From positions 372,001 through 436,000 of the forward strand of contig OZ251234.1 in the NCBI GenBank assembly GCA_965240325.2: DNA of 64,000 nucleotides. Reading direction: 5' to 3'. The notes beneath the pieces were generated by a model. That model saw only the letters and a list, made by a program, of their open reading frames with translations, was not told where the DNA came from and did no database searches. Source of the stretch: Rebecca billardiae RCC1528. Lineage: Eukaryota > Protista > Haptophyta. Shown piece after piece: positions 2,109-62,477 of this stretch. The translations under genes and the position numbers were made by a program. How positions within the stretch are numbered: position 1 is the stretch's first letter; every line of letters starts with the position of its first letter.

Positions 2109-2291
2109 ATGGTGGCTCTCTGGGCCGCGCAGCGCCTCGGGCTTGCGCCCCGCGCACAAGGCGCGTCCGCGCGCGCGTGCTCGCGGAGCGCGGGCGCCGG
2201 CGCGCTGCCCAAGGCGCGCTCCGCCCGCGCACTCGCAACCCCGATCGCACTGCTCCTCCTGCTCGCCGCATCGCTCGTGGCGGCGCGCTCC
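2109..2291 (+). other. Signal peptide or signal anchor with a long (~45 aa) basic n-region
   Basis: Hydrophobic core IALLLLLAASLVAA (2244-2285) follows an Arg/Ala-rich region and precedes R-S-D-A. No other TM-length hydrophobic segment was seen in the protein. Confidence 0.7.
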
Positions 2292-4433
2292 GACGCTGAC
2301 GTGAGCGCCGCCGCGCCGGCCGAGACGGCGGGGGACGCGCAAGCAACAAGTACCGCCGCCGCCGCTCCGGCAGGCGGCGTCGATGCCGCACGCGGCGTCG
2401 GCCCCGACGCGCTCGCCGGCGCGTCGGACGGCCGCCGTCGCCTCACCGGCGTCGACTCTGACGAAGATGGAGTCATCGACATGGACCCAGCGGAGTCGTG
2501 CACGCGTCTGTACGCTCAGGTGAGCTCGGACAGCGCCGGCTACTCCGACGAAGACTGGACCCACATCTTTCGGCTCAACGACGACGAGGAGGACGCCAAC
2601 CTCGACATCAGCTGCGGCAACCTGCCGCTCACGATCGATGTGAAGCTGTCCTCCGAGCCGTTCAGCGACGAAGACGAAGACGACGACGACGACGACTCAG
2701 GCAACAATGGCAAGGGCAAGGGGAACAACCGCCTTCGCCGCCGCCTGCAAGACATCGACTTGAGCGACCTGTACGTGCGTATCAGCTCGAACTGGTGGCT
2801 CAGTCGGCCCAAGCAGATCAAGTTCTCCATGATGGACGAGGAGGACGACTACTACGTGGTCGCCGAGTACACGTTTGACGACGACGTCACCTCGTCGTGC
2901 GGCAACGGGCACACGTCGTTCGGCGGGCAGCTGTGCTCGTACGGCGGGCTGTACCAGCGCTCGTTCAAGACGGTGCACATGGGCACGCCGCCGGCCGGCG
3001 CGACGGGCGACCTGCGCATCGAGATCCTCACCGGCTGGTGCGCGAGCTACTACATCGAGCTGTGGGACATTGACTTCCTCGTCGGCTGCGGCTCGCCGCC
3101 GCCGCCGCCGCCGTCGCCCGCGCCGCCGCCGCCGCAGCCGGCGGAGCTCTCGCCGCCGGCCGGGTGCGACTACATCGAGGTCATCATCGTGCCCGACTTC
3201 TACCTCCAGGAGACCTCGTGGCACGTGAAGGAGGTCGACCCGTCGCTGCTCGACGAGGAGCCAGAGTCGGTGGCGTGCACGTCGGCGATCGCCTTCTCCG
3301 ACTGCGGCGTGCCGGGCGAGATCAAGCTGCAGGGCATCCACCAGCAGTCGGGCTCGTACTGCGCGCCGCCCGGCGTGTACACCTTCGAGATCTTCGACAT
3401 CTACGGCGACGGCCTCATCCCCGAGGCCCACTTCCGGCTCTACGTCAGCGGCACGCTCATCTCCATGGACTCCAACTTTGGCGGCTACCACATCAAGACG
3501 TTCACCGTGCCGCTCAGCCCGCCGAGCCCGCCCACGCCGCCGCTCTCGCCGCCGCCGCCCTCGCCCGTCGACTACTGCGTGCAGTTCGAGGTGAACATCG
3601 TGCAGGACCCGTGGCCGTACGAGACCGAGTGGTCGATCACCGACGACAGCACCAACGAGGTGCTGTACGAGAAGGCGCTGCAGCAGTCGGGCGACGGCTG
3701 CCTCAAGCCGGGCTCGTACACGTTTGAGATCCTCGACTCGTACGGCGACGGCATCTACTTCGGCTCGTACACGCTGATCGTCGACGGCGTGGTCGTGCGG
3801 CAGGACTCGAACTTCGGGCACCAGGACCTGTACACGATCGTCGTCGAGCCGCAGCAGGAGGCCTCGCCGCCGCCGCTCTCGCCGTCGCCGCCGCCGCCGC
3901 CGCCGCCGCCGCCGTCCATCGCGCCGCCGCTGCCGCCGATGAGCTACGACCTGTGCAGCCCGCTCGAGTGCACCAACGCCGAGGCGCGGCTGGACTGGAA
4001 GGCGTCGTGGCCGCTGTCGCGCACGTTCACGCAGTACGGCTACCAGTGGACGCAGACGGCCGACATGAAGTTCGTCGCGCTCGGCACGCACAAGCTCAAG
4101 ATGATCGACGCGGACAACCAGCCGCAGCCGGGCGAGAGCGGCCAGCGCAGCAACAAGAACGACGGCTGCGAGCGCACGTGCCTCTGCCTGTGCGCCGCGC
4201 ACCCGGACTGCATGGCGTTCGAGTACAAGCTGACCGGCTCGCACACGCGGTGCGACTTCTTCAAGAGCGCGCCGCCCAAGAGCGGGCAGGCCAACGACCA
4301 GCAGTACATCACCGTGTGGGAGCGCTCGGGCGACTACGACCCCATCTTCTGGAACGCGGGCGGCACGCCGCCGCCCTCGCCGCCGCCGCCCTCGCCCGCC
4401 TCGCCGCCGCCGCCGCCGCCCACGCCGCCGCAG

Positions 4434-4484
<51 letters not shown>

Positions 4485-6604
4485 ATGCCGATGCCGCCGC
4501 CCAGCCCGCCGCCGCCCAGCCCGCCCTCGCCGCTCTCGCCGCCGCCGCCGCCGAGCCCGCCGCCGCCGCCGTCGCCGAGCCCGCCGCCCTTCCCGCCGCT
4601 GCTCTTCCGCGACGAGTTCACCGACGCGTTCCGCTCGAGCAACGTCCTGTGGGACTTTTTGCCGCTCGACGAGGACGGGCGCTCGGAGTACTGGCACGTG
4701 CACGACTTCGGCATGATGCTGCAGAACGGCGAGCGCCGCGCCGTGCGCTGGGCGCAGGCCATCGGCTCGGCGACCGACTACGACGGCGAGTCGTTTGCGG
4801 TCGGCGCGACGTTTGAGATGTCCAAGCCGCCGCTGCACACGTCGATGGCCGCGGAGGACTCGGCCACCATCATGGTGTGCACGGACAACGAGCACTTCGG
4901 CTGGGTGCAGGGGCCCGAGCCGGGCTGCGTCAAGCTGGTGGTCACGCAGATGGGCTTCCTCGGCCTGCGCTTTGTCGGGTACGGGCAGGCCGGCAACACG
5001 GCGTCCGCCTACTGCTCGTACGAGCCGGACGACGACTTTGAGGGCGACGGCGACGGCTTCGACTTTGAGGGCGACGGCGAGGAGGGCACGCTGACGGGCG
5101 GCTTCGGCGGCTTCGGCGAGCTCTCGCGCCGCCGCCAGCTCCGCCAGCTGCGCGAGGAGCAGCGCCGCCGCCTCCAGGCCGGCGACGACGACGACGACGA
5201 CGGCGACGGCGACGGCGAGCTGATCAACCTCAACCTCAACTCCCTCTTCGACCTCGGGCCGATCAGCGCCATCACGCGCGCGCGCGCGACGAGCATCGGC
5301 GTGCGCGTCACGCCCAACCGCGTGTACTTCTACAACGAGGGCAGCAGCTGCGGCTCGCTCCAGCTCGAGGACGACCTCGGCTCGTCGCCGCGCCTCTTCG
5401 CCTACCTCGGCGTGGACCAGAAGAACAAGCACTACGTCGAGTGGCACAACTTCCACGTGCTGTCGGACGGCGAGGACAACCACGGGCCGCACCAGGACCT
5501 GCCGATCGTCGAGACCTTCGACGGCTCGCCCGCCGACTCGGCGCACAAGTGGCTGATCGCTGAGCCCGACGTGCACCGCGTGCGCTTCATGCCGCCGGGC
5601 ATGCTCAAGGGCGGCGGGCAGCGCAAGATGGTCGTGAAGCCGCCGATGCTCGTCGACAACTTCCGCGTCGAGGTGAAGATGCACCCGCGCGGCGCGGACA
5701 ACGACGTCGCGCTCTTCGTGTGCGACGCGGACAACGCGCCGTCGATGGCCTCGCCCGAGTGGAGCTGGGGGCAGGTCGCCGGGTGCTACCGCTTCGACCT
5801 GCGCGACAACGTGCAGGTCGCCCCGTCGACCGGCGGCGGCGGCGTCTCCGCGCACACGCTCGTCAAGCGCGTCGTCACCGCCGACGGCTCGGCGACCTCA
5901 GGCGGGCTGCCGGACGTGGAGTGCGCGCTCGAGGCGGCCGAGAGCGGCACGACGGCCGGCGGGGCGGTGGGCGTGCTCGGCGGCGCGTACGGCGCGGGCC
6001 GGCCGGCGGTCACCCTCTCGGTGACCGTGCGCCGCGACCACATGGTCTTTGAGGACGACGCGGGCTGCGCCGCCATCACCGTGCCCAACATGCTGCGCGG
6101 CAAGCCGTACAGGCTCGGGCTCGGCTTTGACGAGGACTCGGGCCGCAAGACGTTCGCCTCGCACTTCCGCGTGTACGCCGGCGAGGAGCCCGAGGGGCAG
6201 CGCTCGTGCCACGACTACTGCGCCGAGGCGGGCCACTGCTGCTCGGCGGGCGCCTCCGTGCGCCAGTCCGCCGGCCAGTACCACTCGTGCCTGCAGGGCT
6301 GCATGATGATCCGCTTTGGCGAGCACGCGGGCAGCTTTGAGGAGGTGCACGCGCGCTGCGCGACGTGCGCGCCGGGCAACACCGACCCGGCGTGCCTGCA
6401 CCCCGACAGCTCGTACTCCGCGTTCCGCTACTGCGGCTTCCACGACGGCGTGCTCGGCGACCTCGACACGTGCGCGCCGGCGACCAGCTGCGCGGACGCG
6501 GCGACGTGCACCGAGCCGCCGTCGGTCGACGGCTGCGTGTACGGCACGCTGTTCGGCCAGCCGAGCCCGCCGCCGTCGCCGCCGTCGCCGCCGTCGCCGC
6601 CGTC

Positions 6605-6637
<33 letters not shown>

Positions 6638-7894
6638 CTCGCCGCCGCCGCCGTCGCCCTCGCCGCCGCCGCCGCCGCTCCCGCCCATCCAGCCGTGCGA
6701 GCCCATCCCCACGTACCTGCTGTCCGCGACGCGCACGCTGCTCGTCACGGCCGACCTCGCCAACAACCCGGCGGTGCTCGAGGGCATCAGCGCGTTCGAC
6801 GCGGGCGAGGGCACGTTCGTCGCGGTGAACGGGAACACGCAGCTCAGCTCGATCGCGGGCGCGGTCAGCGGCAGCGGCCAGCTCACCGTCGCGGCCAACG
6901 TGCTCGCCGACCTGCGCTACGCCCGCGCGCTGCAGCTCGGCCAGACGGCGACCTGGTCGTGCAGCGAGCTGCCGCTCTCGATCACGTTCCGCGTGGGCGG
7001 CGGCGAGCCCGCGCGCTCGGAGATGTACCTGCGCCTGCAGTCGGACTGGTGGATGAAGCGCCCGAAGGACATGCGGCTGCACGCGCGCCTCGAGGACGGC
7101 TCGTGGGCGCTCGAGGCCGAGTTCACCTTCCCGAGCGACCTCGCGACGGTGTGCGGCGACGGCGTCGACACGTTCGGCGGCGAGCCGTGCTCGGTCGGCC
7201 TGAGCTCGTACCTCCACGTGCCCGTCGGCGCGCCGCCCGAGGGCGCGACGGGCGAGTACCGGCTCACGGTCCTCAGCTCGTACTGCAACGGCAACTGGAT
7301 GATGATCAAGTCGGCGCTCATGCTGTCTGCCGGCTGCCCCAGCCCGCCGCCGCCGCCGAGCGCGCCGCCGCAGCCGCCGCCCGCGCCGCCGCCGCCGCCG
7401 CCGGCCCCGCCGCCGCTGCCGCCCGCCGACTTCTCGCTGTGCGACTCGATCACGTGCGAGCTCGCGCCGTACGTCGTCCCCTTCGACGGCGACACCGAGG
7501 TCTCCTTCGGCGTCTTCGGCTACGAGTTCAAGCGCATCCCGAACCGGCGCTCCAACCAGCCGCGGCTGTCGGAGGCGGACCTGCTGCGCATCTTCACCGC
7601 GACCGGCGCGTTCGACGGCCCGACCGCGCCCGCCGCGGGCGCGCTCGAGTGGCGGCTCGAGAGCTCGTGCGAGCGGCAGTGCGCGTGCTACTGCGCGCGC
7701 GCGCCGCGCTGCGCCGCCTTCGACTTCACCGGCGTGAACAGCGTGTGCCGCCTGCTGACGAACGCGGACGTGCCGCTCACGCCCACGCCGCCGGGCAGCG
7801 AGACCGCCCACTACAAGCGCGGCGACCAGATGCCGTTCTCGCCGCCGCCGCCCCTGTCGCCGCCGACGCCGCCGCCCTCGCCGATGCCCGAGCC

Positions 7895-7937
<43 letters not shown>

Positions 7938-8358
7938 AGCCCGCCGAGCCCGCCGCCGCGCGAGGTCGCGTGCCAGGACCACTGCTCGCAGCGCGGCTAC
8001 TGCTGCAACGTCGACTACGAGAAGTCGACGGGCCAGCGCCACTCGTGCCTGCAGGGCTGCATGATGATCCGCTTCGGCGAGGACGCGGGCGACCTGGAGG
8101 GCGTGTTCAAGCGCTGCGCGACGTGCGCGCCCGACGCGCCCGCGTCCGTGCACCACCCGGACTGCGACGCGGAGGACCTCTCGCCGCCCAACACGCGCGC
8201 CGTCTACTCGGGGTACAACGACGCCGCGCTCGACGTGCGCCTCAAGACCATCGGCGGGATGTGCCAGGACGTGCGCGAGGAGTCGTGCTTCCGCATGCCG
8301 AGCATCGAGGCGTGCCGCTACGGCGCGCTCTTCGGCCAGCCCAGCCCGCCGCCCTCGA

Positions 8359-8392
<34 letters not shown>

Positions 8393-11300
8393 CGCGGGCG
8401 CGCCCGAGCCGCCCGAGAACGTGCGCCTCTTCTTCTCAGAGTACTGCGACCGGAACGGCCCCGCCGAGTACGTGGAGATCTACAACGGCGGCGAGGTCAC
8501 CGCGTACATGGACGAGGGGTGGGTGCTCGCGATGAACAAGAACGGGCCGCCCACCGTGCCCGGCCAGTGGCACGTCTTCTGGCGCTTCGCCGACGTCTTC
8601 CCCGACGTGACGATCGCGCCGGGCGCCGTGCTCGTGATCGCCAAGATGGGCGCGACCGACCACGTCGCCGAGATCGCCGACCTCCTCGTCGAGGGGTGGT
8701 TCTCCGACGGGAACGACGCGCTCGCGCTGCTCTACGGCATCCACAATCGGGAGGGCGCGTACACCGTCGTCGACCAGATCGGCGACCCGCTCACGCCCGC
8801 GACGGTCGCCATGCCCTCGGGCGCCGCCCAGCGGCCGCCGTGGGACGTGGCGGGCGTCGTCGGCGCGACCAAGGACCACGTGCTCGTGCGCCGGCGCGAC
8901 GTGCTGCACGGGAACGGCGGGGACTGGCTCGGCTCGGCCGGCTCGTCCGCGCTCGACTCGGAGTGGATGGTGCTGCCGCGCGACGAAGAGAGCTTCGTCG
9001 GCTTCCACCCGCACGAGTTCAACCCGTCGCCGCCGCCGCCGATGCCGCCGCCGAGCCCGCCGCCGAGCCCGCCGTGCTTCCCGGTGCGCGTCGACATCGC
9101 GCCCGACCCGTGGCGGTACGAGACGCAGTGGACGATCACGCGGCTCTCGGACGAGGAGCTGATGGCGAAGGAGGAGAACTCGAACTCGTGGGCCGGCTGC
9201 CTCGGCGCGGGCGTCTACGACTTCGCCATCACCGACGACTGGGGCGACGGCATCGTCGGCGACGGCACGCCGCTCGACGGCGTCGAGCTCGTCGCCGAGG
9301 CGACGGTGATCGCCGCCGCGACCAACTTCGGCTCGGAGATGCACAAGACGTTCACGCTGCCGCTGCCGCCGTGCACCGACGTCGCGGTCGAGTTCATCCA
9401 GGACCCGTGGTACTGGGAGACCTCGTTCTACATCACGCACGTCACCTCGGGCGCGACGGTGATGCAGGGGATCAACCAGGTGGGCGACGACTCGTGCCTC
9501 GAGGACGGCTCGTACCGGCTGGTGATCACCGACACGTACGGCGACGGCGTGTCGCTCGGCGCGGTGATCTTCAAGATCGGCGGCGAGATCATCTTCTCCG
9601 ACGACGACTTCGGCTACCAGATCATCTTCCCCTTCACGCTGCCGTACGACGGCGCCGAGACGGAGGGGCCCGATCTGCCGCCGCCGCCGTCGCAGATCCT
9701 CTTCGACGACTTCACCGACGCGGGCGGCTCGTCCGAGCTGTGGGACCACCTCGACCTGCAGATCTACGGCACGGTCTGGATCGAGGAGTCGGGCATGCTC
9801 GCCTCCACCGGCTCGGGCGTCGCCGTGCGCAAGCTCGCCGCGCTCGGCACCGCCGCGGACTACGGCGGCGAGTACACGGTGACCGCGCAGTATCTGCCCG
9901 TGTACGACCGGCTCACGGACGACGACGCGCTCGTGATGCTGTGCACGCTGCCCGACGTGCACGAGGTGAAGCCGTTCGTCGCGGACACGCACCTGCGCTT
10001 CGAGCAGCCCGGCTGCGTCAAGTTCCTCATGCACGACGTCTTCTCGCGCACGCTCAAGCGCATCTTCGGCGAGACCTCGCGCTCGGCCGAGCCGTACTGC
10101 TTCCCGAACACGGACGGCAACACGATGACCGTCAAGGTGACGCCCACCAGCGTCGTCTTCACGGACGACGTGGGCTGCGCGACGCTCGAGATGGAGACGG
10201 ACATCGGCGCGCGCGCCGAGCCGATCTACCTCTACCTCGGCTCGGACGAGGACTACGGCCGCTGGCTCGAGTGGAAGTTCGTCGAGATCAAGGACGCGTC
10301 GGGCGGCGTCGTGTTCTACGACTCGTTCGACGAGCCGGCCTTCTTCGACGCGGAGTGGGACATCGCGCTGAACCAGACGCTGAACCACCGGTACATCGGG
10401 CCGGGCACGCTCAAGATGCGCGGGCAGCGCAAGCTCGTCACGAAGCAGCCGTTCAACGCCGCCTCCTTCCGCGTGACGATGCACGTGTCCACGCACCACC
10501 TCGTCGTGCCGGACGACGACAACTTCGTCATCTGGGTGTGCGAGCTGGGCGCGTCCGAGACGCTCTCGTCGTTCTGGTCGTGGTCGGCGTCGTCGGGCTG
10601 CGTGCGCATGGACGCGATGGGCGAGTCGCGCTCGCTGCGCAAGCGCGGCCTCGCGGGCGGCGTGTACACCGACTCCGTCACGTGCAAGATGCCAGCCGAG
10701 CTGCTGCTGACGGTCGACGTGGCCGAGGGCGTGATGGAGTTCTCCGACGACGCGGGCTGCCCGCGCGTGCACGTCGAGCACTCGCTCTCGCCGCCGTACA
10801 AGGTGGGGATCGGCACGCACGAGCCGCACGGCATCTGGTCGTGGTTCCACTCGGTCAACATCACGCACAACCTCACCTACGCCGAGTCGCCGCCCACGCC
10901 GCCGCGGCCGCCGCCGCCGTCGGCGAGCCCGCCGCCCAACCTGGGCGGCTCGTGCCCCGTGCAGCACCTCAACCCGGGCTCGCAGATCCTCGACTGCGGC
11001 AACGCGGTCTCGGGGAACACGGTGGGCGCGCCCAACGTGTACCACAACCTCGCGGGCGAGCACTGGTACTCGATCAACGTGGACACGACCAAGCAGGTGG
11101 TGATCACCTCGTGCGCGGACGACGCGTTCGACCAGTACCTCCACCTGTACCAAGGCTGCCCGGCGAGCGGCGGCGTGCGCATCAAGTACAACGACGACTC
11201 GTACTGCACGACGCACACGGAGGGCAACCACTACTCGCTGCAGCCCACCATCAACGTCAACCTCGAGGCGGGCGTCGACTACTACCTCATGGTCGAGGGC

Positions 11301-11900
11301 TACTACTGGTTCGAGGGCTACTACGTCGTCGAGATGTTCTGCCCGGGCGACTCGCCGTGGCCGCCGCCGCCGTCGGAGCCGCCGTCCGCGCCGCCGTCGC
11401 CGCCGTCGCCGCCGCCGCCGCCGCCGTCGCCGCCGCCGTACCCGCCGGGCTTCTGCCCGGTGCTCGGCCTCGAGCCGCCTCGCGCCGGCGCCGAGCAGCT
11501 GCTCATGTGCGGCGAGACCGTGAGCGGCGACACGACGGGCGCGCCGGTCGCGATCGGCGCCAACGTCGCGGGCCACTCCAACTCGGGCCAGCACTGGTAC
11601 CGGGTGCTCGTGAACGTGCCCGAGGGCTCGACGTTCCACGTGACGCTGGACACGTGCGCGGAGGCGCTCGCGACGACGGGCTTCGACACGCGCCTCCACC
11701 TCTACCGCGGCTGCCCCACGCGCGACGGCGTGCGGCTGAGCAACAACCTCGTCGGCCCGGCGTGGGACGACGACCCGACGTGCGCGTACGGCAACTCGCG
11801 CTCGCGCATCGAGTACGAGCTGCAGCCGGCAGAGGAGTACTTCGTCGCGGTGCAGGGCTTCTCGACGCACGAGGGGCCGTACGAGCTGCGCCTCACGTGC

Positions 11901-11931
<31 letters not shown>

Positions 11932-12917: not shown

Positions 12918-12950
<33 letters not shown>

Positions 12951-13034
12951 CCGTCTTCGCCGCCGCCCTCGGCGCCGCCTCCGCCGTCTCCGCCGCCGCC
13001 ACCCAGCCCGCCGCCGCCGTCTCCGCCGCCGCCG

Positions 13035-13100
<66 letters not shown>

Positions 13101-14099: not shown

Positions 14100-14130
<31 letters not shown>

Positions 14131-14328
14131 TGCCGCCGTCGCCGCCGCCGCCGCCGCCGCCGCCGCCGAGCGCGCCGCCGCCGAGCGCGCCGCCGCCGCC
14201 CAGCCCACCGCCGCCCAGCCCGCCCCCGCCGCCGCCGTCGCTGCCGCCGCCGCCGCCCTCGGCGCCGCCGCCAGCGCCTCCGCTGCCGCCGCCGCCCTCG
14301 CCGCCGCCGCAGGCGCCGCCGCCGCCCA

Positions 14329-14367
<39 letters not shown>

Positions 14368-14568
14368 GCCTGCCGCCGCCGAGCCTTCCGCCGGCACCGC
14401 CGCCGCCCACGCCGCCCACGCCGCCGTCGCCGCCGCCAGAGTCGCCCTTCCCGCCGCCGTTCCCCACGCCGCCGCCGCCCGTGCCGCCGCCACGCCCGCC
14501 GCCCGCGCCGCCGCCGGCGCCGCCTCCGAGCCCGCCGCCACCGCCGCCGCCGAGCCCACCGCCGCCCT

Positions 14569-14610
<42 letters not shown>

Positions 14611-14935: not shown

Positions 14936-14976
<41 letters not shown>

Positions 14977-52700: not shown

Positions 52701-55700
52701 GGCTCGACGGGCAACCTCGCCTTGGCCATCACGCTGCGCAACTACGCGGGCGAGGCGGTGACGACGCAGGCGGCCATGCGCGCGGAGATCAGCTACCTCG
52801 CGACGGAGGGCACTGCCGTCTACACGCTCGGCTCGTCGGACGGCACGTCGCCGGACGGGTACTGGCTCGCCAACCTCGCGCACGCTGGCAACGGCGTGTA
52901 CTCGCTGCTGGTGCACCCGCTGCCGTACTGGGTGAGCGGCCGGCTCTTCGGGATCGCGTTCATGCTCGAGACGACCGACAGCTCGGGCGGCACCGAGAGC
53001 GAGCGCAACTTCGCCTTCTTTGGCAGCAGCGCGCCGCCGTACTCGGAGACGGGCTCGTCGTTCAGCCCGTACAAGTACATTGCCGTCACCGGCCCGACCG
53101 TCCTGCTGCCGCCGCTGCCGCCGCCGTCTCCGCCGCCGCAGCCGCCACCCTCGCCGCCGCCGCGGCCGCCGCCGCCTTCCCCCCCGCCGAGCTCACCGCC
53201 GCCCTCGTCGCCGCCCGCGTCGCCGCCACCGCCGCCTCCGCCCTCGCCGCCGCCCGTGACGTGCCGCGGCGCCGCCGCGCTCGTCGAGGGTGCAACGGCC
53301 GTGTTCGAGGCGAGCGCGTCGGGCCCGGGCTTTGCGCTCGACGGCACGTACTCGTCGACCAACCCGACCTTCTCGGAGGACTTTGGCTTCTTCTACGCGT
53401 ACCCGCCGCAGACGAACGGCCGCGTGACCGCGTCAATCCAGGGCTACTCGTACCTCGAGCGCTCGCGCACCTTCAAGATGAGCCGCAGCGAGGTGGCGAG
53501 CGTGAGCGTCGTCGTGCGCACGGACACGGTGTACGAGGACCGCAACGCCGTGCGCGTCGCGTACCAGGTGCGCGACGACGCGGGCCGCACGGACGTGGAC
53601 ACCAGCGGGCTGACGGTGCAGCTCGCGCTCGCGCACTCGAGCGGCTCGCCCACGAGCACCACGTCGTGCTCGTCGCCGTCGACGGGCGGCATCGGCCTGT
53701 GCTCGGTGTCGCTGGGCAGCGAGTGGTTCTCGACGAGCGCGGGCTCGGCCACGGTGACCGTCACTGCCAAGTACGGCAGCACGGTCGCCGCGAGCGAGGC
53801 GGGCAGCGCCGTCACGCTGGCGGCCTCGCCGACGCACGGCACGCTGTCGGCGGCGGGCATGCTCGCGACGATGGTCTCCGCCCCGCAGTACCCCGGCGAC
53901 ACCGTCACCGTCGAGATCAGCGCGCACACCGGCGAGTTTGCGCTCGGCTCGTGGTTCCTGCTGGCGCAGTTCGACACGTCGGTGCTCGAGTTCGCGAGCT
54001 CGACGGGCAGCGACCTGTACGCGTCGCCGCAGGTGGTGGTGGACCTCGAGAACGGCCGGCTCACGGGGCAGGCGCTGTCGCTCAACGACGGCGTCGCTAG
54101 CGCCGAAGTGACCGGCTCGGCCGTCCCCCTGCTCACGCTCAGCTTCACGGTGCGAAGCGTCTCGGCCGGCACGTACGCCGACGCCATCTCGCTGTCCATC
54201 GACTCGATGGCCAACACCGGCGGGAACACGTACGTGCAGGACCAGGCGGGCTTCGTGGCCGACGATCGCGACGGCCTGCAGTCGTCTGGCCGCCTCGCCG
54301 TCGAGGCGGTCGCCGCGGTGGGCGCGCACGCGTACACGGACATCGTCGAGGTGGTGAACACCGCGCCGCTCACGGGCGATGCGATCAGCGCGCAGGTGAG
54401 CGTGCTCGAGCACTACAACCGCGCGTCCACGTCGTCGAGCGTGGAGACCTCGTCCTACCTGTGCAGCTCGGCGGACGACACCGTCGTCACCGCCGACTTT
54501 GGCACGTGCGCGCTCTCGCTCACGGCTTCGCACCTCGCCGGCGCTGCCTCGGTCGCCATCACCGCCTCCGGGCCGTCGGCGCTGAGCGCGCAGACGCCGA
54601 TGCGCGTGTGGTACCCGCTGAGCGCGACGATGAGCGTGTCGGACGGCGAGCTGCAGCGCGTCGACCTGCTGCAGAGCGCGTCGTCGTGCGGCTCGCCGGG
54701 CTACCAGAGCGCCGAGGTGAGCGTCGTCGCCGACTTTGGCGGCGCGTCGCTGGCGACGGTGAGCAGCGTCGACGTGAGCGCGCTGGTGACGCTCGTCTCG
54801 GGCGACAGCGGCGTGGCGACCGTCGACGGCTCGATGGTGACGGGCGTGGGCGCCGGCTCGACGAGCGTGACGCTCGGCGGCGGCGCAACGTCGCCGGCGA
54901 GCGCCAGCGTGAGCGTGAGCGACGTGGTGCTGACGGCCAACCTGACGGCGGTCGCCATCTCGACGCTCTCGTGGTCGACGACGCCGCCGACGAGTGTGCC
55001 TGCCACGCCTGCCACGTACTCGTTCACCGCGGGCGCTGAGCTGGCGCAGTCGCTGACGCAGGAGGGCGACGAGGCGGGCGTGTACGCGTGGGCGAGCTTC
55101 TCGGACGGCACGACGGCCAAGGTCTCCCCGGCGCAGCTGCAGGTCACCACGAGCTCGTCCGGCGTCGAGCTGACGTCGGGCGACTCGTCCACGCCGTGGA
55201 AGCTGGCGGTCGCGTCCGGCGCGCTGCCCGAGTGCCGCGAGATGCTCGAGGTCGAGTGGACGGTGTGCTCGGCGACGGTGGCGCGCGACACGGCGTACGT
55301 GCACCTCGACATGCCGGGCGCCGAGTCGCTCACCGCCACCTCCGTCGAGTCGCGCCTCACCTCGCCCGACGACCCCGCGCGCGTGGCGCCCGTGTCGGTC
55401 GCGACGTCGTCGGCCATCCGCGTCGAGGTGCGCTTTGAGAACGGCAACACGCAGACGATGACCGGCGACAGCCGCGTCGAGATCTCGGTGACGAGCCCGA
55501 CGTCGTGCGCGACGATGAGCGGCTCGTTCGAGGTGTCGATCACCAACGGCGCGAGCTGCGAGACCGTCGAGCTCGCCGTCTCGATCCCCACGTTTGGCGT
55601 GAGCGGCACGCTGAGCGTCCCCGTCGTGTACCTGGATCGCTTCTTCCTCACCGCCTCGCCGCACCCGACCTACTCGGGCTCGACGAGCGTGGTGAAGTCG

Positions 55701-58700
55701 ACGCTGCACAAGGTCGACTGCACGGACGCGTACCAGCACGCGCAGGCGGCGGCGACCGCGCTGCTCACCGACGCCACCTCCGTCGCGGTGACGAGCAAGG
55801 CGGCGTTCAGCTCGACCAACTCGTCGGTGGTGGACGTGGACGGCACGCGCCTGATGGGCGTGCGCCCCGGCACCGTCGGCGTCACCGCGCGCTGGGCGAG
55901 CATCGACAGCGAGATGTACGTGCTGTCGGTCTCGGACGTGCCGGTGGTCATCACGGCGCTGCAGCTCCAGTTCGCCAGCCTCGATCGCGACGACACGCTG
56001 CTCGGCGTCGCGGGCACGCAGCGCACCGTCAAGGTGCGCGTCGAGTTTGACGACGGCACCGTCTTCACCAACTTCATCACCAAGGTCGAGTCGTGGTGGA
56101 TCCCGACGTCCGACCTGCTGCTCTTCTCGAGCGGCGCGGCCTCGGCCGTCACCGTCTCGACCGAGGGCATGATGACGCTGCTCGACAACCACTTCGAGCT
56201 CGTGACGATGACGGTCACGTCGGCGTGCGACGCGGCGATGCTCGACGCAAACACGCTCGCCGCCAACCTCGCGCCCGCCGACTTCGACGTCGACCTGGGC
56301 AGCCAGTACGGCGTGCAGTTCCAGCAGGAGGGCGACACGCTCGAGGTCGCGCTGCGCATGCACTCGGACGGCGAGCTCAAGAACTTCCAGATCGATGTCG
56401 AGTTCGACGACGCGGTAGTGCTCGCGCAGTCGTACGTGCAGGGCGCCGACTGGGGCGGACAGTTCTCGTGCACGCTCAACGACCCGAGCAACAAGGTCAC
56501 GTGCATCGGCAACGACGCTGAGTCGACGGCGTCCGGCTCGGACCTCGAGCTGGCGGTCATCCAGTTCACGGCGCAGTCGACGGCGCACGTCACGTTCTCC
56601 GCGTCGATCATCGACGCGCTGCAGTTCGTGGGCGGCGTCGAGACGCGCCTCACCGACGCGACCGCTGTCGCCGGCCGCGGCGTGGCCGCGCTCACGCTCA
56701 GCCGGCTGCGCCGGCTCGCCGAGGTGCGCGCCAAGACGCAGCGCCGGACGGCCGCGCGGCGGCATGCGCGCGCGCACAACAACCGGCGCCGGCTGCAGAC
56801 CTCGTTCACCACCGAGGACATCGAGGACTTCGTGTACACAGAGTGGAGCCTCGACAGCGGCTGCGACGCCAAGTGCGACGTGCTCGGCGACCTGAACAAC
56901 GACTGCGTCTTCACGTCGTACGACGTGTTCGCCGCGTCGATCGTGTTCAGCGGCGTCGCGCTCGACGTGGTCAACCTCGGCGGCCTCTGCGCCAACATCC
57001 AGAGCCGGCTCGACCCGACGCTCGACGGCGACTTTGGCCTCTCCGACCTGACGTACCTGCTGCTCACGGTCGGGCGCAAGCGCCACTTTGTGACCAACGT
57101 GACCGTCGACTCGACCGCCGTGGTCGCAGGCACCCAGGGCAACGTCGAGCTCGCGCTCACGCTGGTGAACGCGGAGGGCGGCGCCGTCACGACGCAGGCG
57201 AGCGTGCGCTCCGAGATCAGCTACGACCAGAGCGAGGGCACCGCCCTCTTCGACGAGGGCACCGACGGCGGCACGTCGCCGGACGGCGGCTGGCTCGGCG
57301 TGCTCGATCACGTCGGCGCGGGCCGGTACTCGATGAAGGTGCACCCCGATCCGTTCTGGCTGACGGCGCGCACGTTCGGCATCGCGTTCATGCTCGAGAC
57401 GACCGACAGCTCGGGCAACTCGGACGACGACCGCAAGTACCCGTTCTTCGGCTCGAGCGTCGAGACGTACGCCGCGCAGGGCTTCACGTTCTCGCCGTTC
57501 GCCGAGCTGGCTGTCTCCGGCTTCTCCAACCTGACGCTGCCGCCGTCGCCGCCGCCGCTGCCGTCGCCGCCGCCGCCGCCGTCGTCGCCGCCACCGGACG
57601 TGCCCTCGCCGCCGCCCAAGCCGCCGCCGCGTCAGCCGCCACCGCCGAGTGCGCCGCCGCCGCCGCCGCCGGCACCGTCGCCAAGCCCGCCGCCCGCGCC
57701 GCCCGCGCAGCCGTCGCCGCCGCCGGGCCTGCCGTCGCCACCGCCGCCGCCGCCAAAGGTGTGCCCGACGACTGCGGAGCTGCTCAACGGCGCCTCCGCC
57801 ATGTTCGAGGCGAGCGCGTCGGGCCCGGGCTTCCCGCTCGACGGCACGTACTCGTCGACCAACCCGACCTTCTCGGAGGACTTTGGCTTCTTCTACGCGT
57901 ACGCGCCGCAGACGAGCGGCCGCGTGACCGCGTCGATCCAGGGCTACTCGTACCTCGAGCGCTCGCGCACGTTCACGATGAGCCGCAGCGAGGTGGCGAG
58001 CGTGAGCGTCGTCGTGCGCACGGACACGGTGTACGAGGACCGCAACGCGGTGCGCGTCGCGTACCAGGTGCGCGACGACGCGGGCCGCACGGACGTGGAC
58101 ACGAGCGGGCTGACGGTGCAGCTCGCGCTCGCGCACTCGAGCGGCTCGCCCACGAGCACCACGTCGTGCTCGTCGCCGTCGACGGGCGGCGTCGGCCTGT
58201 GCTCGGTGTCGCTGGGCAGCGAGTGGTTCTCGACGAGCGCGGGCTCGGCCACGGTGACCGTGTCGGCCAAGTACGGCAGCACGGTCGCCGCGAGCGAGAC
58301 GGGGGCCGCCATCACGCTGGACGCCTCGCCGGCGCACGGCACGCTGACGGCGGCGGGCATGCTCGCGACCACGGTCTCCTCGCCGCGCTTCCCGGGCGAC
58401 ACGTTCGACGTGAGGATCACCGCGCACACGGGCGGCTTCTCCATGCTGTTCTGGGGCATCACCGCGCAGTACGACACGTCGGTGCTCGAGTACGAGGGCG
58501 CGACCCAGAGCAGCCTGTACAACTCGCCGAGCGTCGGCGTCGACAGCGGCGCCGGCCTGATCAGCGCGTCCGTGCTCGACATCGCGGGCGGTGTGGACGA
58601 GGCGGACGTGCTGGGCACGGCCGTGCACGTGATCACGCTGAGCTTCCGCGTGGCCTCGGGCGCGCCGACCGGCGCGGTGCACGCCGACGTGCTCGCGCTC

Positions 58701-61700
58701 ACCGTGGACAACATGAACAACCAGGACCGCTCGTACGTGACCAACCAGGTTGGCTCGCTGCTCGACGACCGCGACGGGCTGCAGACGTCCGCGCGCCTGG
58801 CCGTGGAGGCGGAGGCGGTGGTGGGCGCGCACGCGTACACGGACGTGGCCGAGGTGGTGAACACCGCGCCGCTCACGGGCGACGCGCTCAGCGCGCAGGT
58901 CAGCGTGCTCGAGCACTACAACCGCGCGTCCACCTCGTCGGGCGAGGCGGCCACCTCCTCGTACACGTGCGCCACTGTCGCCAGCGCCGTGCTCTCGGTC
59001 GGCGCGTCGAGCTGCGCCGTGACGATCTCGGCCGCGCACAGCGCGGGCTCGGCGTCCGCCAGCATCGACGTCACCTCGGTGGACACCGCCGTGGTCGCGC
59101 AGACGCCGATGCGCGTGTGGTACCCGCTGAGCGCGACGATGAGCGTGTCGGACGCCGCTCTGGAGCGCGTCGACCTGCTGCAGAGCGCGTCGTCGTGCGG
59201 CTCGCCGGGCTACCAGAGCGCCGAGGTGAGCGTCGTCGCCGACTTTGGCGGCGCGTCGCTCACGACGGTGAGCGGCGTCGACGTGAGTTCGCTGGTGACG
59301 CTCGTCTCGGGCGACAGCGGCGTGGCGACCGTCGACGGCTCGATGGTGACGGGCGTGGGCGCCGGCTCGACGAGCGTGTCGCTCGGCGGCGGCGCGACGT
59401 CGCCGGCGAGCGTGGGCGTGAGCGTGAGCGACGTGGTGCTGACGGCCAACCTGACCGTCGTCGCCATCTCGACGCTCTCGTGGTCGACGACGCCGCCGTC
59501 CACGGTCTCGGCCGCGCACGGCACCACGTTCACCGCGGCCGCGGACGTGGCGCAGGTGCTCGAGCTCGAGGGCGACGAGGCGGGCGTGTACGGCTGGGCG
59601 AGCTTCTCGGACGGCACGACCGCGCGGGTGCCCGCGACGCAGCTGCAGCTCACGTCGCTCACGTCCGGCATCGAGCTGACGTCGGGCGACGCGTCGACGC
59701 CGTGGAAGATGGCGGTCGCCACCGGCGCCGCCTTCGAGTGCGGCGACCTGCTCTCCGCGTCGTGGAGCGTGTGCGGCGTCGTGGTGGCCGAGGACCTGGT
59801 GCCCGTGCTGCTCGACCGGCCGGGCGCGAGCGGCCTCAGCCTCGCGTCGTCGCGCTCGCGGCTCACCTCGCCGAGCGACCCCGCGGCCGCGACGCCGGTG
59901 TCCGTCTCGACGAGCGCGGAGATCACCGTGCTCGTCCAGTTCGAGACCGGCGACTCGCAGGACTTCAGCTCGGACGAGCGCGTGACGGTGGAGGTGCTCA
60001 ACCCGCTGTGCGCGACGCTCGAGTCGGGCACGGCCAAGCCGACCGTGCGCGTCAAGTTCACGCTCGACGTGGCCGCGTGCACGAGCGTGGAGGTGCGCGT
60101 CGCCGTGCCGTCGCTCGCGGTCTCGGAGACGCTCTCCGTGCCCATCGTGTACCTCGACGAGCTGTACGTCGGCGTCTCGCCGTACCCGGCGTACTCGAGC
60201 CCGGACTCGTCGACGTACGTGGTGAGCAGTCTGAACAAGATCGAGTGCACCGGCTACTACCAGCACGGCAAGGCGAGCGCGACCGCGCGGCTCACGGACG
60301 GCGACGAGATCTCGGTCACGTCGTTCGCGACGTTCGCCTCGACCGACTCGGCGGTCGTCCTCGTCGAGGCGCCCACGCGGCTGCGCGGCGAGAGCGCCGG
60401 GCTCGTCGACGTCACCGCGACGTGGGCGTCGACCGTGTCGACGCCGTACGCGCTCGAGGTCTCTGACACGCTCGTGCTCGTGACCGACCTCATCCTCACC
60501 TTCCAGGGGCTCACGCGCGGCACGCTGTACGGCGAGGTGGGGCACAGCCGCTCGGTGCGCGTCAAGGTGATCTTCTCCGACGGCACGCGCTTCTCCAACT
60601 TCCTCACCGACGTCGACTGGATCCCGACGAGCGAGCTGCTCACCTTCGCCACGAGCGCGCCCGCCGCCGTCTCGATCTCGACCGAGGGCGTGATGACGCT
60701 GCTCGGCAACCACCACGAGGCGGTGGGCGTGCAGGTGAGCAAGGCGTGCGACGGCTCGCAGGAGATGACGAACGAGCTCTTCGCCAACCTCAAGCCCGCC
60801 AACGGCGACGTCGACCTCGGCCACCAGTACGGCCTGCAGTTCTCGCAGGACTCGGACGGCACGTTTGAGGTCGCTGTGCGCGTGCACGCCGACGGCCTGC
60901 TCAACAACTTCCAGATCGACGTGTACATCGACCCCGCCGTGTTCCACGTCGCGTCGGAGGACGACTGCGAGCAGGGCGCGGACTGGGGCGGCATCTTCTC
61001 CTGCACGCCCAACGACCCAACCGACGTGGTCACCGTCGTGGGCAACGACGCCGAGTCGTCCGCGACGGGCGAGGCGATCGAGGTGGCGGTGATCAAGCTC
61101 ACGCCCAAGACATCGGCGCGCTCGACCATCTCCGCGCTCATCATCGACCTGGTGCAGACGAGCAGCGGCGTGGAGCAGCGGCTGAGCAACGTCGACGTGT
61201 TCGCCGGGCTGGGCGACGCGCTCGCCGTCGTCGACCGCCGCCGCGCGCGCCAGCTCTCCGCAGCGAACGTGCTCGCCGCCGCGGACGCGCGCGCCGCGCG
61301 CCGCGCGGCCGCCGCCGCCGCCGCCGCCGCGCGCGCCGCCAACCGGCGCGCGCTGCAGACGGCCTCGTTCACGTCCGCGCAGATCGTCGAGCTGGTGTAC
61401 GAGACGTGGGACCTGGACGACGAGGCGAACGGCAACTGCGACGCCAAGTGCGACGTGCTCGGCGACCTGGACGGCGACTGCGTCTTCACGTCGTACGACG
61501 TGTTCGCGGGCTCGATGGTGTACACGGGCATCCAGCTGGGCGTGGTCACGTGGAACGACCTCTGCCTCAACGTGCGGCAGCGGCTCAACGTCAACCTGGA
61601 CACGTCCTTCTCGCTGACCGACCTGCGCTACCTGCTGCTCGTCGTCGGGCGCAAGCTGCACTTCATCACCAGTGTCGAGTCGGACGACAGCGCGTGCGTC

Positions 61701-62477
61701 GCGGGCAGCACGGGCGACCTCGCCATCGACGTCACGCTCAAGAACTACCTGGGCGAGCCCGTCACCTCGCAGACGGCGCTGCGCGCCGAGATCAGCTACG
61801 GCGCGACGCAGGGCAGCTCGCAGCTCACCACCGGCACCGCCGACGGCACCTCGCCCGACGGGTACTGGCTCGCGAGGTTTGCGCACGTCGGCGGCGGCGT
61901 CTGGTCGCTGCGCGTGCACGCCGGGCCGTACTGGCTCGACGCCGTCGCGTTCGGCGCGGCGATCATGCTCGAGACGGCCGACTCGAACGGCGGCACGGAG
62001 GATCCGAACCGGCGCGTCGCCTTCTTCGGCTCGTCCGTCTCGCCCTACTCGGACACGGGCGGCACCTTCCTGCCCGTCGCCGAGTTCGCCACGTCTGGCG
62101 CCATCATCCCCTCGCCCTCGCCGCCGCCCTTCCCTCCGCCGTACATCATCCCCGAGTACGACGAGGACGAGCTCGGCGCGATCTTCGACGAGGCGAGCGG
62201 CGTGCTCTACGTGGCGGGCAACGACCCGCTGCCCGACCGGTTCGGCAAGGTGGACATGCAGTTCTCGCCGCTCGTCTCGCGCGCGACGCGCGGCTCGAAG
62301 GTGTACTGGGCGTTCCTGCCGTCGGAGGAGGACGGCACGCTCAGCCCGGCGCGCATCGAGCAGCTCATCGACGAGCACGAGCGCTGGAGCGCGTGGACGG
62401 GCGGCAAGGACAAGTCGGTTGACATCAACGCCAAGATCACGCAGCAGGTCGAGGCCGCCCTCGCGCGCCGGCGCTGA
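2109..62477 (+). CDS. Giant (20,122 aa, ~2 MDa) secreted Pro-rich modular polyprotein with nine TMEM132-like/cohesin/Ig/dockerin super-repeats
   Basis: Single stop-free frame of 60.4 kb with strong G/C third-position bias throughout. The ORF-track start at 2076 is TTG; the first ATG is at 2109 in a good Kozak-like context (GCCAGCGATGG). TGA at 62475-62477. Coherent repeated globular modules alternate with SPPP linkers. Confidence 0.93.
2499..3089 (+). other. Module A1: Cys-bracketed discoidin/galactose-binding-like beta-sandwich. Paralogues A2 6696-7337, A3 13317-13868, A4 16380-16994
   Basis: Shared motif C..LPL.I.F...YLR..S.WW.KRP..I.L.A...D..W..E..FTF......CG.G..TFG..PC...YRL......C....L..C in four copies. 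The fold assignment is by pattern only. Confidence 0.55.
3165..3848 (+). other. Modules B1 and B2: 'D-x-W/Y-x-x-ET-x-W ... Y.F.I.D.YGDG' small beta domains. Paralogues B3/B4 9075-9645, B5 17193-17504
   Basis: Five copies, e.g. QDPWPYETEWSI...CLKPGSYTFEILDSYGDGI...SNFG. The motif is familiar from secreted proteins of marine bacteria and algae. Confidence 0.7.
3954..4352 (+). other. Module C1: PAN/Apple-like domain. Paralogue C2 7440-7830
   Basis: CERTCLCLCAAHPDCMAFEY...RCDFF and CERQCACYCARAPRCAAFDF...VCRLL match the PAN C-x3-C-x5-C-x2-F-x-Y...C pattern. Confidence 0.6.
4599..6185 (+). other. Module pair D1a and D1b: ConA/lectin-like beta-sandwiches. Paralogue pair D2a/D2b 9696-10880
   Basis: Each half begins F.D/E.F.D......W and contains GCVK/GCYR and D..GC motifs. 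The pair recurs at 9696-10880 (LFDDFTD..LWD; PG.LK..GQRK). Confidence 0.5.
6207..6560 (+). other. Module E1: unnamed Cys-rich domain. Paralogue E2 7971-8339
   Basis: C.D.C...G.CC......GQ.HSCLQGCMMIRFGE.AG..E.V..RCATCAP...C.YG.LFGQ in two copies, near-identical at DNA level in the core. Confidence 0.75.
8418..9020 (+). other. Bacterial-type lamin-tail (LTD) domain
   Basis: LFFSEY...EYVEIYN...NG...TIAPGAVLVIA...DGNDALAL...VDQIGD...WDVAGVVGATKDHVLVRR...GN..W...SEW is the signature of LTDs in secreted bacterial proteins. Confidence 0.8.
10953..11900 (+). other. Two PPC-like (pre-peptidase C-terminal-type) beta domains, G1 10953-11342 and G2 11454-11900
   Basis: CG..VSG.T.GA....HWY.....V....C...FD..LHLY.GCP......NDD..C....S.I...L..G..Y...V.G....EG.Y.....C. 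Confidence 0.65.
11901..13307 (+). repeat. Extensin/pherophorin-like (Ser-Pro3-4)n rod 1, ~470 aa
   Basis: CCG/AGC/TCG-dominated coding minisatellite encoding SPPP(P) units. Confidence 0.95.
13872..16370 (+). repeat. Extensin-like Pro-rich rod 2, ~830 aa
   Basis: Continuous SPPP/TPPP/APPP coding repeats. Confidence 0.95.
17508..17912 (+). repeat. Extensin-like Pro-rich rod (a shorter one lies at 16998-17183)
   Basis: SPPP coding repeats. Confidence 0.95.
18258..18614 (+). other. Three ShKT (ShK toxin-like) domains: 18258-18356, 18369-18467, 18504-18614
   Basis: C-x8-C-x6/8-C...C-x2-TC-x2-C pattern ending CERTCRRC, CKATCGFC and CKSTCGAC. Confidence 0.85.
18630..19364 (+). other. von Willebrand factor type D (VWD) domain with GDPH motif and C8-like Cys-rich tail
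   Basis: AVCESHGDPHFTTWTGVRYDWQG.G.Y.L...GLC...C.YDCC, with GDPH at 18651-18662. Confidence 0.85.
19365..21281 (+). repeat. Extensin-like Pro-rich rod 3, ~640 aa, separating the N-terminal modules from the super-repeat array
   Basis: SPPP/APPP/LPPP units. Internal duplication with a 504-bp offset (e.g. 20417 vs 20921). Confidence 0.95.
21285..25556 (+). repeat. Super-repeat R1. Cohesin-like 1 ~21895-22305; Ig-like series; cohesin-like 2 ~24345-24712; RRRRL..RRRLQ 24720-24809; dockerin-like 24897-25092
   Basis: One of the two most divergent copies. Carries all shared motifs (VRVAYQVRD..GR, EVVNTAPLTG, TPMRVWYP, GDLNGDC..SSYD). Confidence 0.9.
25839..30107 (+). repeat. Super-repeat R2. Processing sites 29283-29372; dockerin-like 29460-29655
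   Basis: Colinear protein similarity to R1 and R3-R9. Confidence 0.92.
30606..34883 (+). repeat. Super-repeat R3. Sites 34065-34148; dockerin-like 34236-34430
   Basis: Near-identical DNA to R4 (offset 4551). Confidence 0.95.
35157..39434 (+). repeat. Super-repeat R4. Sites 38616-38699; dockerin-like 38787-38982
   Basis: Near-identical to R3 and to most of R5 (offset 4590). Confidence 0.95.
39753..44024 (+). repeat. Super-repeat R5. Sites 43206-43289; dockerin-like 43377-43572
   Basis: Near-identical to R3/R4 except for its N-terminal ~600 bp and short patches. Confidence 0.95.
44304..48590 (+). repeat. Super-repeat R6. Sites 47763-47849; dockerin-like 47937-48132
   Basis: Colinear similarity, with a distinct cohesin-like 1. 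Confidence 0.93.
48825..53108 (+). repeat. Super-repeat R7. Sites 52272-52370; dockerin-like 52458-52653
   Basis: Colinear similarity. Dockerin loops GDIDGDCEFSSYD and DANLDGELGLTD. Confidence 0.93.
53262..57539 (+). repeat. Super-repeat R8. Sites 56703-56798; dockerin-like 56886-57080
   Basis: Colinear similarity. Dockerin loops GDLNNDCVFTSYD and DPTLDGDFGLSD. Confidence 0.93.
57762..62108 (+). repeat. Super-repeat R9. Sites 61236-61358; dockerin-like 61461-61655
   Basis: Colinear similarity, with a divergent C-terminal half. Confidence 0.92.
62142..62477 (+). other. Unique ~110-aa C-terminal domain, no TM or GPI signal
   Basis: YIIPEYDEDELGAIF...QQVEAALARRR-stop, with no hydrophobic tail. 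Confidence 0.6.

Follow-up and report, generated by a model that had tools for sequence, protein, structure and literature searches.

An apparently intronless 60-kb reading frame in the haptophyte Rebecca billardiae predicts a 2-MDa secretory-pathway protein with nine cohesin-dockerin super-repeats

The DNA analysed here is a stretch of 64,000 nucleotides (the window) from the Pavlovales haptophyte Rebecca billardiae RCC1528 (GenBank assembly GCA_965240325.2, contig OZ251234.1, positions 372,001 to 436,000), and the subject of this report is the giant protein coding sequence on its forward strand at 2109..62477. From the first ATG at 2109 the sequence comprises 20,122 codons and a stop; the open reading frame (ORF) listing gives it as 2076..62477 (+), with 20,133 codons counted from the first alternative start, and the in-frame stop upstream lies at 2004-2006, leaving the frame open from 2007. 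The predicted protein has 20,122 amino acids (aa), a computed mass of 2.079 MDa and a computed pI of 4.4, and consists of an N-terminal mosaic of globular modules, a region of long polyproline rods, nine tandem super-repeats and a unique C-terminal tail. An earlier reading of the letters without database searches (hereafter the sequence-only reading) had described 20,122 codons free of stops and frameshifts, encoding a secreted protein of about 2 MDa; we obtain the same codon count from the ATG at 2109, and the computed mass and an N-terminal targeting segment agree with the second part of that claim. A real eukaryotic, apparently intronless giant coding frame, predicted from its sequence to specify a secretory-pathway protein of about 2 MDa, is confirmed.

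Spurious long ORFs are usual in very GC-rich DNA, and the guanine-plus-cytosine (GC) content of the window is 72.5% (73.25% in the genome of Diacronema lutheri; PMC8379373). Other frames of the window reach 4,687 aa, and on these grounds the giant ORF might be a chance frame in non-coding DNA or a dead gene, an explanation to which we give practically no credence. At this base composition stops make up about 1.5% of random codons and therefore 20,000 stop-free codons are not attainable by chance; over the whole window the five other frames contain 57-566 stops, and the 39 stops of the giant frame all lie outside the ORF, which runs for 60 kb without a single stop or frameshift. The GC content is position-specific (0.645, 0.588 and 0.957 at codon positions 1, 2 and 3). 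Folded, homologous domains are spread along the length of the ORF, with Pfam and PDB homology in frame, more than 1,000 homologues and modelled folds at a predicted local distance difference test (pLDDT) score of 93. The ratio of nonsynonymous to synonymous substitution rates (dN/dS) is 0.29-0.40 in young repeat pairs. In older pairs it is 0.7-1.1, a range that is uninformative because a third-position GC content (GC3) of 96% pins synonymous sites and thereby caps dS.

The 'uniform codon bias' of the sequence-only reading stands for most of the gene, with an overall GC3 of 0.96 and a GC3 of at least 0.84 in every 50-codon window except the Pro-rich linkers and the first 170 codons (0.76-0.82), but it fails in four inter-repeat Pro linkers, where GC3 is 0.54-0.74. 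These linkers (30066-30635 between repeats U2 and U3, 34836-35195 between U3 and U4, 39396-39845 between U4 and U5, and 43986-44375 between U5 and U6) mix the Pro codons CCA, CCT, CCC and CCG within a gene of GC3 0.96; the remaining linkers and the long rods have a GC3 of 0.8-1.0. Selection against perfect DNA repeats, or a different linker age, may account for this. Two long antisense ORFs lie opposite the giant gene, at 53433-62735 (-) (3,100 aa, ATG start) and 15861-29924 (-) (4,687 aa). Long ORFs like these, antisense or in another frame and at most 4,687 aa, arise as by-products of GC3-rich coding, and a gene finder could mis-call them.

A second explanation accepts the coding DNA but not its expression as one unspliced unit: in-frame segments, above all the rods, would be spliced out as introns, or internal promoters would yield several shorter transcripts, and in both cases the proteins would be well under 2 MDa. 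Introns are present in 55% of D. lutheri genes, the remaining 45% being single-exon (PMC8379373), and the authors of that genome, using BRAKER2 with RNA-seq, took the rods of a D. lutheri paralogue as introns. All three frames are open in the three CCG-rich rods of the giant gene, so the stop-free state there is weightless as proof of coding. The repeats, however, show no intron-like insertion, given that the only repeat-specific insertions of 6 aa or more among the nine are 8 aa in U9 and the U9 C-terminal tail, and GC3 is never relaxed in the globular parts. The frame of the downstream modules is kept across all 25 Pro-rich segments, the three long rods included, and similar but shorter Pro linkers are clearly coding. 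The rods themselves are supported as coding because their Ser residues are written with both AGC and TCG and because the S-P-P-P periodicity of codons is read in the giant frame only. Coverage dropouts at 85-90% GC explain the annotated rod introns more simply, and we consider splicing or internal initiation unlikely.

The sole strong hydrophobic segment of the protein (ALATPIALLLLLAASLVAA, 2229..2285 (+), ORF residues 52-70) lies near its N-terminus; a Kyte-Doolittle scan of the 20,133 aa gave just one other, weak, peak. A basic stretch of about 40 aa separates the segment from the Met at residue 12. Its sequence suggests either a signal peptide, with possible cleavage between VAA and RS, or a type II signal anchor, and as the n-region of a signal sequence the basic stretch is unusually long. 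The N-terminal mosaic (aa 1-3266, 2076..11873 (+)) contains 13 globular modules of 87-641 aa, which fall into about five recurring families and are linked by Ser-Pro linkers of 28-90 aa. Pfam gave only weak LTD and PAN matches in the mosaic, and structural look-alikes for its 641-aa module were uninformative.

In the rod region (residues 3267-6409), three polyproline rods of the SPPP type alternate with small modules. Rod 1 has 484 aa (11874..13325 (+)), rod 2 has 850 aa (13854..16403 (+), GC up to 90%) and rod 3 has 654 aa (19341..21302 (+)); their DNA is simple sequence of 85-90% GC. One of the small modules is Cys-rich, with 31 Cys in 354 aa (18279..19340 (+)) and a weak, sub-threshold resemblance to VWD, and a Pfam search of aa 3101-6800 gave no match. 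The whole protein has 423 SPPP+ motifs and 3,594 Pro-rich residues; 2,113 of its Pro stand in runs of at least three. If it forms a polyproline II (PPII) helix, rod 2 has a calculated length of about 260 nm, and we infer that the polyproline stretches are stiff, probably glycosylated PPII spacers of about 1.1 µm in total. The C-terminal tail (126 aa, 62097..62474 (+)) is hydrophilic, and the hydropathy scan found no transmembrane or glycosylphosphatidylinositol-like hydrophobic end in it.

Between the rods and the tail lie the nine super-repeats of about 1,415 aa each (residues 6410-20007, 21303..62096 (+)), separated by Pro linkers of 66-173 aa: U1 (21303-25535), U2 (25854-30089), U3 (30609-34862), U4 (35160-39425), U5 (39762-44009), U6 (44313-48566), U7 (48837-53084), U8 (53283-57518) and U9 (57780-62096), all on the forward strand. 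Their protein sequences are 50-78% identical, with U3-U5 at 95-98%. A repeat opens with a TMEM132-type ectodomain, continues with extra immunoglobulin (Ig)-like domains, a cohesin and an Arg-rich spacer, and closes with a two-loop dockerin followed by a beta-sandwich. In U7, the TMEM132-type ectodomain (repeat residues 9-688: conserved region, cohesin-like domain and Ig domains 4-6) occupies 48861..50900 (+), the canonical cohesin, recognized by Pfam PF00963 above its curated cut-off, 51891..52166 (+), the Arg-rich helical spacer with its two polybasic motifs 52272..52436 (+), and the dockerin, with two Ca-binding loop-helix repeats (GDIDGDCEFSSYD ... DANLDGELGLTD..YLL), 52458..52655 (+). The dockerin segment after the spacer reads GDLDGDCVFSSYDV...LNPNLDSDFGLTDIRYLLL.

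An AlphaFold2 model of U7 residues 1-1200, built from 80 homologous segments, has a mean pLDDT of 93 and shows about eleven beta-sandwich domains followed by helices. Searched with Foldseek against AlphaFold Swiss-Prot, it had TMEM132 proteins (human, mouse, rat, zebrafish and Caenorhabditis elegans) as all but one of its top 14 matches, repeat residues 9-688 aligning with residues ~44-810 of TMEM132A-E, which is the whole ectodomain, at E 3e-35 to 4e-30. Ig_TMEM132_4th exceeds its Pfam cut-off of 27 bits, at 45-54 bits, and the fifth and sixth domains are sub-threshold yet in order. By structural alignment and Pfam, the TMEM132 ectodomain order of a conserved region, a cohesin-like domain and three tandem BIG/Ig domains is present in the repeats. 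Foldseek matches of the same 1,200-aa model in the PDB (Nup210, alpha-2-macroglobulins and S-layers) are generic Ig-array proteins and were rejected as relatives.

The second half of the cassette resembles the connectors of cellulosomes. Pfam Cohesin (PF00963), a nine-stranded jelly-roll, reaches 39-44 bits where the cut-off is 24.1, and the repeat cohesin matches solved cellulosomal cohesins with a Foldseek TM-score by target of 0.60-0.70. Single repeats gave no match to Pfam Dockerin_1. When 45 family segments were combined in a profile, solved type I dockerins were recovered at E 3.9e-8 to 1e-4 with both loop-helix repeats covered, and loop positions 1, 3, 5 and 12 are D or N in both loops of all nine repeats. 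In a second model (U7 residues 952-1416; pLDDT 93.4, predicted template modelling score 0.89), cohesin, spacer, dockerin and sandwich form one compact body, an arrangement compatible with a dockerin folding back on the neighbouring cohesin. Within the parts scanned, Pfam found no catalytic, carbohydrate-binding module or cadherin domain.

The number of repeats, the length of the rods or the joining of two paralogous loci could still be a product of assembly, in which case the gene would be real and its length partly artefactual. U3-U5 are 96-98.6% identical in DNA (U3/U4 98.6% and U3/U5 95.9% over 4.25 kb), with an almost identical 3' 2 kb, which means that the repeat number could be off; the rods are simple sequence at 85-90% GC, and D. 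lutheri carries a paralogue with similar rods. At 50-78% identity, the six other repeats are too diverged for an assembler to collapse or duplicate. A single indel error in any globular part would interrupt the 60-kb frame, and no such break is seen. The module order is also collinear with that of the orthologue in Pavlovales sp. CCMP2436, and we regard an assembly artefact as quite improbable. Within U3-U5 (30609-44009) the differences cluster in the 5' halves, and the final ~2 kb of U3 and U4 differs at 5 positions. The pattern resembles that of a recent duplication accompanied by gene conversion, or of a homogenisation gradient.

The interval between cohesin and dockerin carries a feature shared by the wider family, namely two polybasic motifs (RRRR-L and R-x-R-R-x-L) around a non-conserved spacer of 20-30 residues. 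The second motif reads RRRLQ in the repeats of this protein and RRALQ in U9; it lies at 52356-52370 (+) in U7 and starts at 24795, 29358, 34134, 38685, 43275, 47835, 56784 and 61344 (+) in the other repeats. RR[RA]LQ occurs 11 times in the protein, once per repeat and twice outside the repeats, where about 0.006 occurrences are expected by chance. The two outside copies, at 2736-2750 (+) (residue 221) and 5163-5177 (+) (residue 1030), are placed in acidic low-complexity loops (…GKGKGNNRLRRRLQDIDL… and …REEQRRRLQAGDDDDDDGDGDG…), and the first may indicate where a pro-region of about 150 aa is cut off behind the signal peptide. The spacer loop with RRRLQ is the lowest-confidence part of both AlphaFold2 models. 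At least two dibasic sites are found in 42 of 45 family segments and a strict R-x-[KR]-R in 21 of the 45. The polybasic pair is conserved across haptophytes, Cymbomonas and Mesostigma. Secreted cell-wall proteins of diatoms provide a parallel, in that an 'RXL domain' ending in RRL is removed by an unidentified protease (PMC5525289). Motifs that look like basic cleavage sites are thus found at module boundaries, as in secreted polyproteins. The sequence-only reading had proposed polyprotein processing; the conserved motifs that flank the spacer, and the 11 copies of RR[RA]LQ, lend it real though indirect support, and cleavage itself is what we infer from them.

The same features allow another protein, an uncut surface fibre anchored at its N-terminus (type II), whose cohesins and dockerins would bind other proteins and whose Arg-rich spacer would be a structural helix or a polyanion-binding site. 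A hydrophobic segment of 18-19 residues behind a strongly basic 40-aa stretch fits a signal anchor, the spacer is modelled as mostly helical, the second site here (P-R-R-R-L) is without the strict furin consensus, and 34 of 174 retrieved relatives are membrane-anchored. Yet the two polybasic motifs are kept around a spacer that is not conserved, from haptophytes to Cymbomonas and Mesostigma, and the RRRLQ pentapeptide returns in two acidic loops outside the repeats. The small residues that end the hydrophobic core (V-A-A before R) are compatible with signal-peptidase cleavage. We hold an uncut, anchored fibre to be an unlikely alternative to the secreted and processed protein.

The cassette is widespread in algae and uncharacterised. 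In a library of 1.84 billion representatives, it has 1,055 relatives at E <=1e-3 and 289 at E <=1e-30, many of which measure 4,000-8,000 aa and hold as many as six cassettes; named sources are Prymnesium, Cymbomonas tetramitiformis, Mesostigma viride, an MMETSP transcript and many environmental contigs, and all family members are 'hypothetical' or automatically named. The part from cohesin through spacer and dockerin to sandwich is conserved in 37 segments from 33 proteins. The transmembrane-like segment that the 34 anchored relatives, like TMEM132, have near the C-terminus is absent from the giant protein, which has far more polyproline than any other annotated family member; more is found only in the unannotated part of the D. 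lutheri paralogue ORF. The closest relatives of the repeats are from Pavlovales sp. CCMP2436 (46-52% identity), followed by Prymnesium parvum, and the D. lutheri paralogue is 37-38% identical. A distant relative, P0173 (environmental, 5,696 aa, from a 700-kb contig), has cadherin, cohesin, dockerin (PF00404) and TMEM132 domains. Its architecture is coherin/hedgling-like and includes a dockerin that Pfam recognizes, and it may be a link between the cassette of algae and the cadherins of holozoans.

A gene of this kind had been expected to be fragmented or missed in annotation, and for the repeat region this is what we see. Queries from the repeat region found no protein more than 49% identical to the repeat in the 1.84-billion library of 50% cluster representatives, and none in a 5.8-billion library within the length brackets 780-2,480, 2,750-8,750 and 5,500-17,500 aa; these searches cover the repeat region only, and a model in the N-terminal third, one above 17,500 aa, or one under a 50% representative could remain. 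The relatives are fragmented as well. The CCMP2436 orthologue (MU631561.1:176986-213720) is collinear over at least 27 kb and at least six repeats, and ten N-gaps and a contig end cut it into at least four partial models; the full gene is probably tens of kilobases long. At JAGTXO010000038.1:55213-99674 in D. lutheri, the paralogue ORF encodes at least 11,481 aa (locus positions 17-34462) and continues upstream of the locus, with rods of at least 3,134, 2,845 and 552 aa. The annotated protein there, KAG8459670.1 (4,660 aa), is built of three blocks. Two in-frame rods, the ones with 2,845 and 552 aa, are passed over in it as 'introns', and the first 3,328 aa (10 kb) of the paralogue ORF within this locus are left without annotation.

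The flanks of the gene carry the eukaryote-type microsatellites and the miniature inverted-repeat transposable element (MITE) that the sequence-only reading had mentioned. Upstream of the gene are a (TA)n tract (847-899) and a MITE-like palindromic element of 304 bp (956..1259, no strand assigned) whose inverted repeats measure 15 nt at the termini, where they are perfect, and 33 nt in subterminal position, and 3' of the stop is a CA-rich imperfect microsatellite (~62,520-62,590). The 3' flank also holds an imperfect direct repeat of about 115 bp (63211-63319 and 63433-63550, 83% identity). Compared with the D. lutheri paralogue locus and the CCMP2436 locus, the gene flanks gave no match. A bacterial contaminant was considered and rejected in view of the haptophyte closest relatives, the microsatellites in the flanks and the clear coding statistics.

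Among known systems, the nearest to the first ~680 residues of each repeat are the animal TMEM132A-E proteins (Sanchez-Pulido and Ponting 2018, PMC6030884), which share the whole ectodomain in the same domain order. TMEM132 proteins are single-pass type I membrane proteins with one ectodomain and a cytoplasmic tail with WIRS and PP1 motifs, whereas the giant protein has nine ectodomains, accompanied by further Ig-like domains, a second and canonical cohesin, a dockerin and polyproline rods, and has neither transmembrane helix nor tail. Without a membrane anchor and with nine ectodomains, it is not a strict member of the TMEM132 family. The complete TMEM132 architecture has been found in holozoans, and dockerins are not detectable in vertebrates (PMC6030884); the giant protein comes from an alga, outside that group. 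Choanoflagellate and sponge cadherins of the coherin, hedgling and lefftyrin types combine cadherin repeats with a TMEM132-type cassette, and the giant protein has no cadherin match in the parts scanned.

The giant protein shares with bacterial cellulosome scaffoldins the cohesin fold, the two-loop dockerin, the tandem array on a giant extracellular scaffold and linkers rich in Pro, Ser and Thr. However, scaffoldin cohesins bind the dockerins of separate enzymes, whereas here both modules stand in one chain, 1:1 and about 60 residues apart, in a eukaryotic secretory context, with a conserved Cys in place of the cellulosomal Gly at dockerin loop position 6 and with binding that is predicted. 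It is not a cellulosome, given that both partners are in one chain and that the Pfam-scanned parts contain no enzymes.

The rods point to the hydroxyproline-rich glycoproteins (HRGPs), such as extensins, volvocine pherophorins, the Chlamydomonas mastigoneme protein and FMG1B, in which long Ser-Pro(3+) shafts of the PPII type connect globular domains, and which are targeted to the secretory pathway and act at the surface or in the matrix. Repeated Ser-Pro(3-5) in a protein predicted to be secreted, the hallmark of extensin-like proteins, is found here. The giant protein differs in its 3,594 Pro-rich residues, its rods of up to 850 aa, its haptophyte host and its TMEM132, cohesin and dockerin cassettes in place of pherophorin or lectin domains, and the Ig-like arrays in the mastigoneme and FMG1B structures are only generically similar to it.

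Animals, too, have giant extracellular proteins, among them the large mucins. A matrix protein of Drosophila, the multi-MDa, ZP-domain-containing and extracellular Dumpy, is described in PMC10597583, citing Wilkin et al. 2000. Dumpy and the large mucins resemble the giant protein in their multi-MDa size at the surface or in the matrix, their many small repeated modules and a role of proteolytic processing; unlike it, they are multi-exon and membrane-anchored and have EGF, DPY and ZP or SEA and VWD domains. In the sequence-only reading, the best-known giants were intracellular and multi-exon, which the extracellular Dumpy (PMC10597583) makes an overstatement. PKZILLA-1 and PKZILLA-2 of Prymnesium parvum have products of 4.7 and 3.2 MDa and 17 and 12 exons (10.1101/2024.01.29.577497). 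The PKZILLA genes are likewise giant haptophyte genes that escaped standard annotation, but they are multi-exon and encode intracellular polyketide synthases of unrelated sequence. The size class therefore has precedent in Dumpy and the PKZILLAs. Diatom silaffins and silicanin-1 (PMC5525289) are similar as secreted precursors with R-R-L-type motifs after acidic stretches, but there is no homology, the lysine/serine-rich silica-forming repeats are lacking here, and the motif of the giant protein stands between cohesin and dockerin, where cleavage would be predicted.

Taken together, we favour, with moderate confidence, a single giant gene of a Pavlovales haptophyte whose 20,122-aa acidic secretory protein is a micrometre-scale fibrous component of the cell surface or matrix, with PPII rods, Ca-dependent cohesin-dockerin binding and cleavage as its predicted properties. 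It would act in the manner of a giant modular protein of the matrix or of adhesion that combines an algal HRGP-type shaft with TMEM132-type ectodomains and cellulosome-type connectors. What weighs against this reading is the near-identity of U3-U5 in DNA, the open frames of the rods and their treatment as introns in D. lutheri, the long n-region, and a second polybasic site that departs from the strict furin consensus kept in fewer than half of the family segments; the dN/dS of older repeats counts neither way.

The mechanism that we propose for such a protein is more speculative. Cohesins and dockerins would bind each other in a Ca-dependent manner, in cis or between molecules, turning the chain into a self-associating fibre or lattice. 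In the secretory pathway, a kexin/furin-like protease or one of the diatom 'RXL' type might cut the polybasic sites (RRRR-L ... R-x-R-R-x-L; RRRLQ) and release pieces of about 1,500 aa with an N-terminal dockerin and a C-terminal cohesin, which would stay joined or re-join head to tail by non-covalent cohesin-dockerin bonds. Cutting at every site would yield a large N-terminal piece with the U1 cohesin at its end, eight dockerin-to-cohesin pieces of about 1,500 aa and a short C-terminal piece starting with a dockerin. This would be the cellulosome principle used for building instead of degradation: an exported precursor, cut at RRxL or dibasic sites, whose roughly nine pieces, with a TMEM132-like adhesion module and a polyproline linker between their dockerin and cohesin ends, hold together or polymerise by Ca-dependent, mechanically strong bonds into a micrometre fibre or lattice. 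The algal cassette, widespread in haptophytes and in green-lineage flagellates (Cymbomonas and Mesostigma among them), would be the ancestral context of the animal TMEM132 ectodomain. As a whole we put it forward tentatively, as a possible but doubtful scheme.

Unusual features are an apparently single 60-kb exon that encodes a secretory protein, nine pairs of cohesin and dockerin with conserved basic sites in between, and a TMEM132 ectodomain in an alga. If it is made as one chain, the protein is among the largest predicted for any eukaryote, and it is 2.5 times as long as the longest of the 174 retrieved relatives (7,984 aa). A secretory protein of 20,000 residues encoded apparently without an intron raises questions of transcription, translation, translocation into the endoplasmic reticulum and export. 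Standard gene finders miss or split a whole class of giant GC-rich genes with proline rods in algae. The nine cohesin-dockerin pairs with basic sites offer a testable model of a self-assembling extracellular material in a eukaryote, and the paired modules might also serve as orthogonal protein 'connectors'. Hearing loss and panic disorder in humans have been linked to the TMEM132 ectodomain, which to our knowledge has no known molecular function. Its presence in a much older algal context, next to cohesins and dockerins, may hint at its binding partners.

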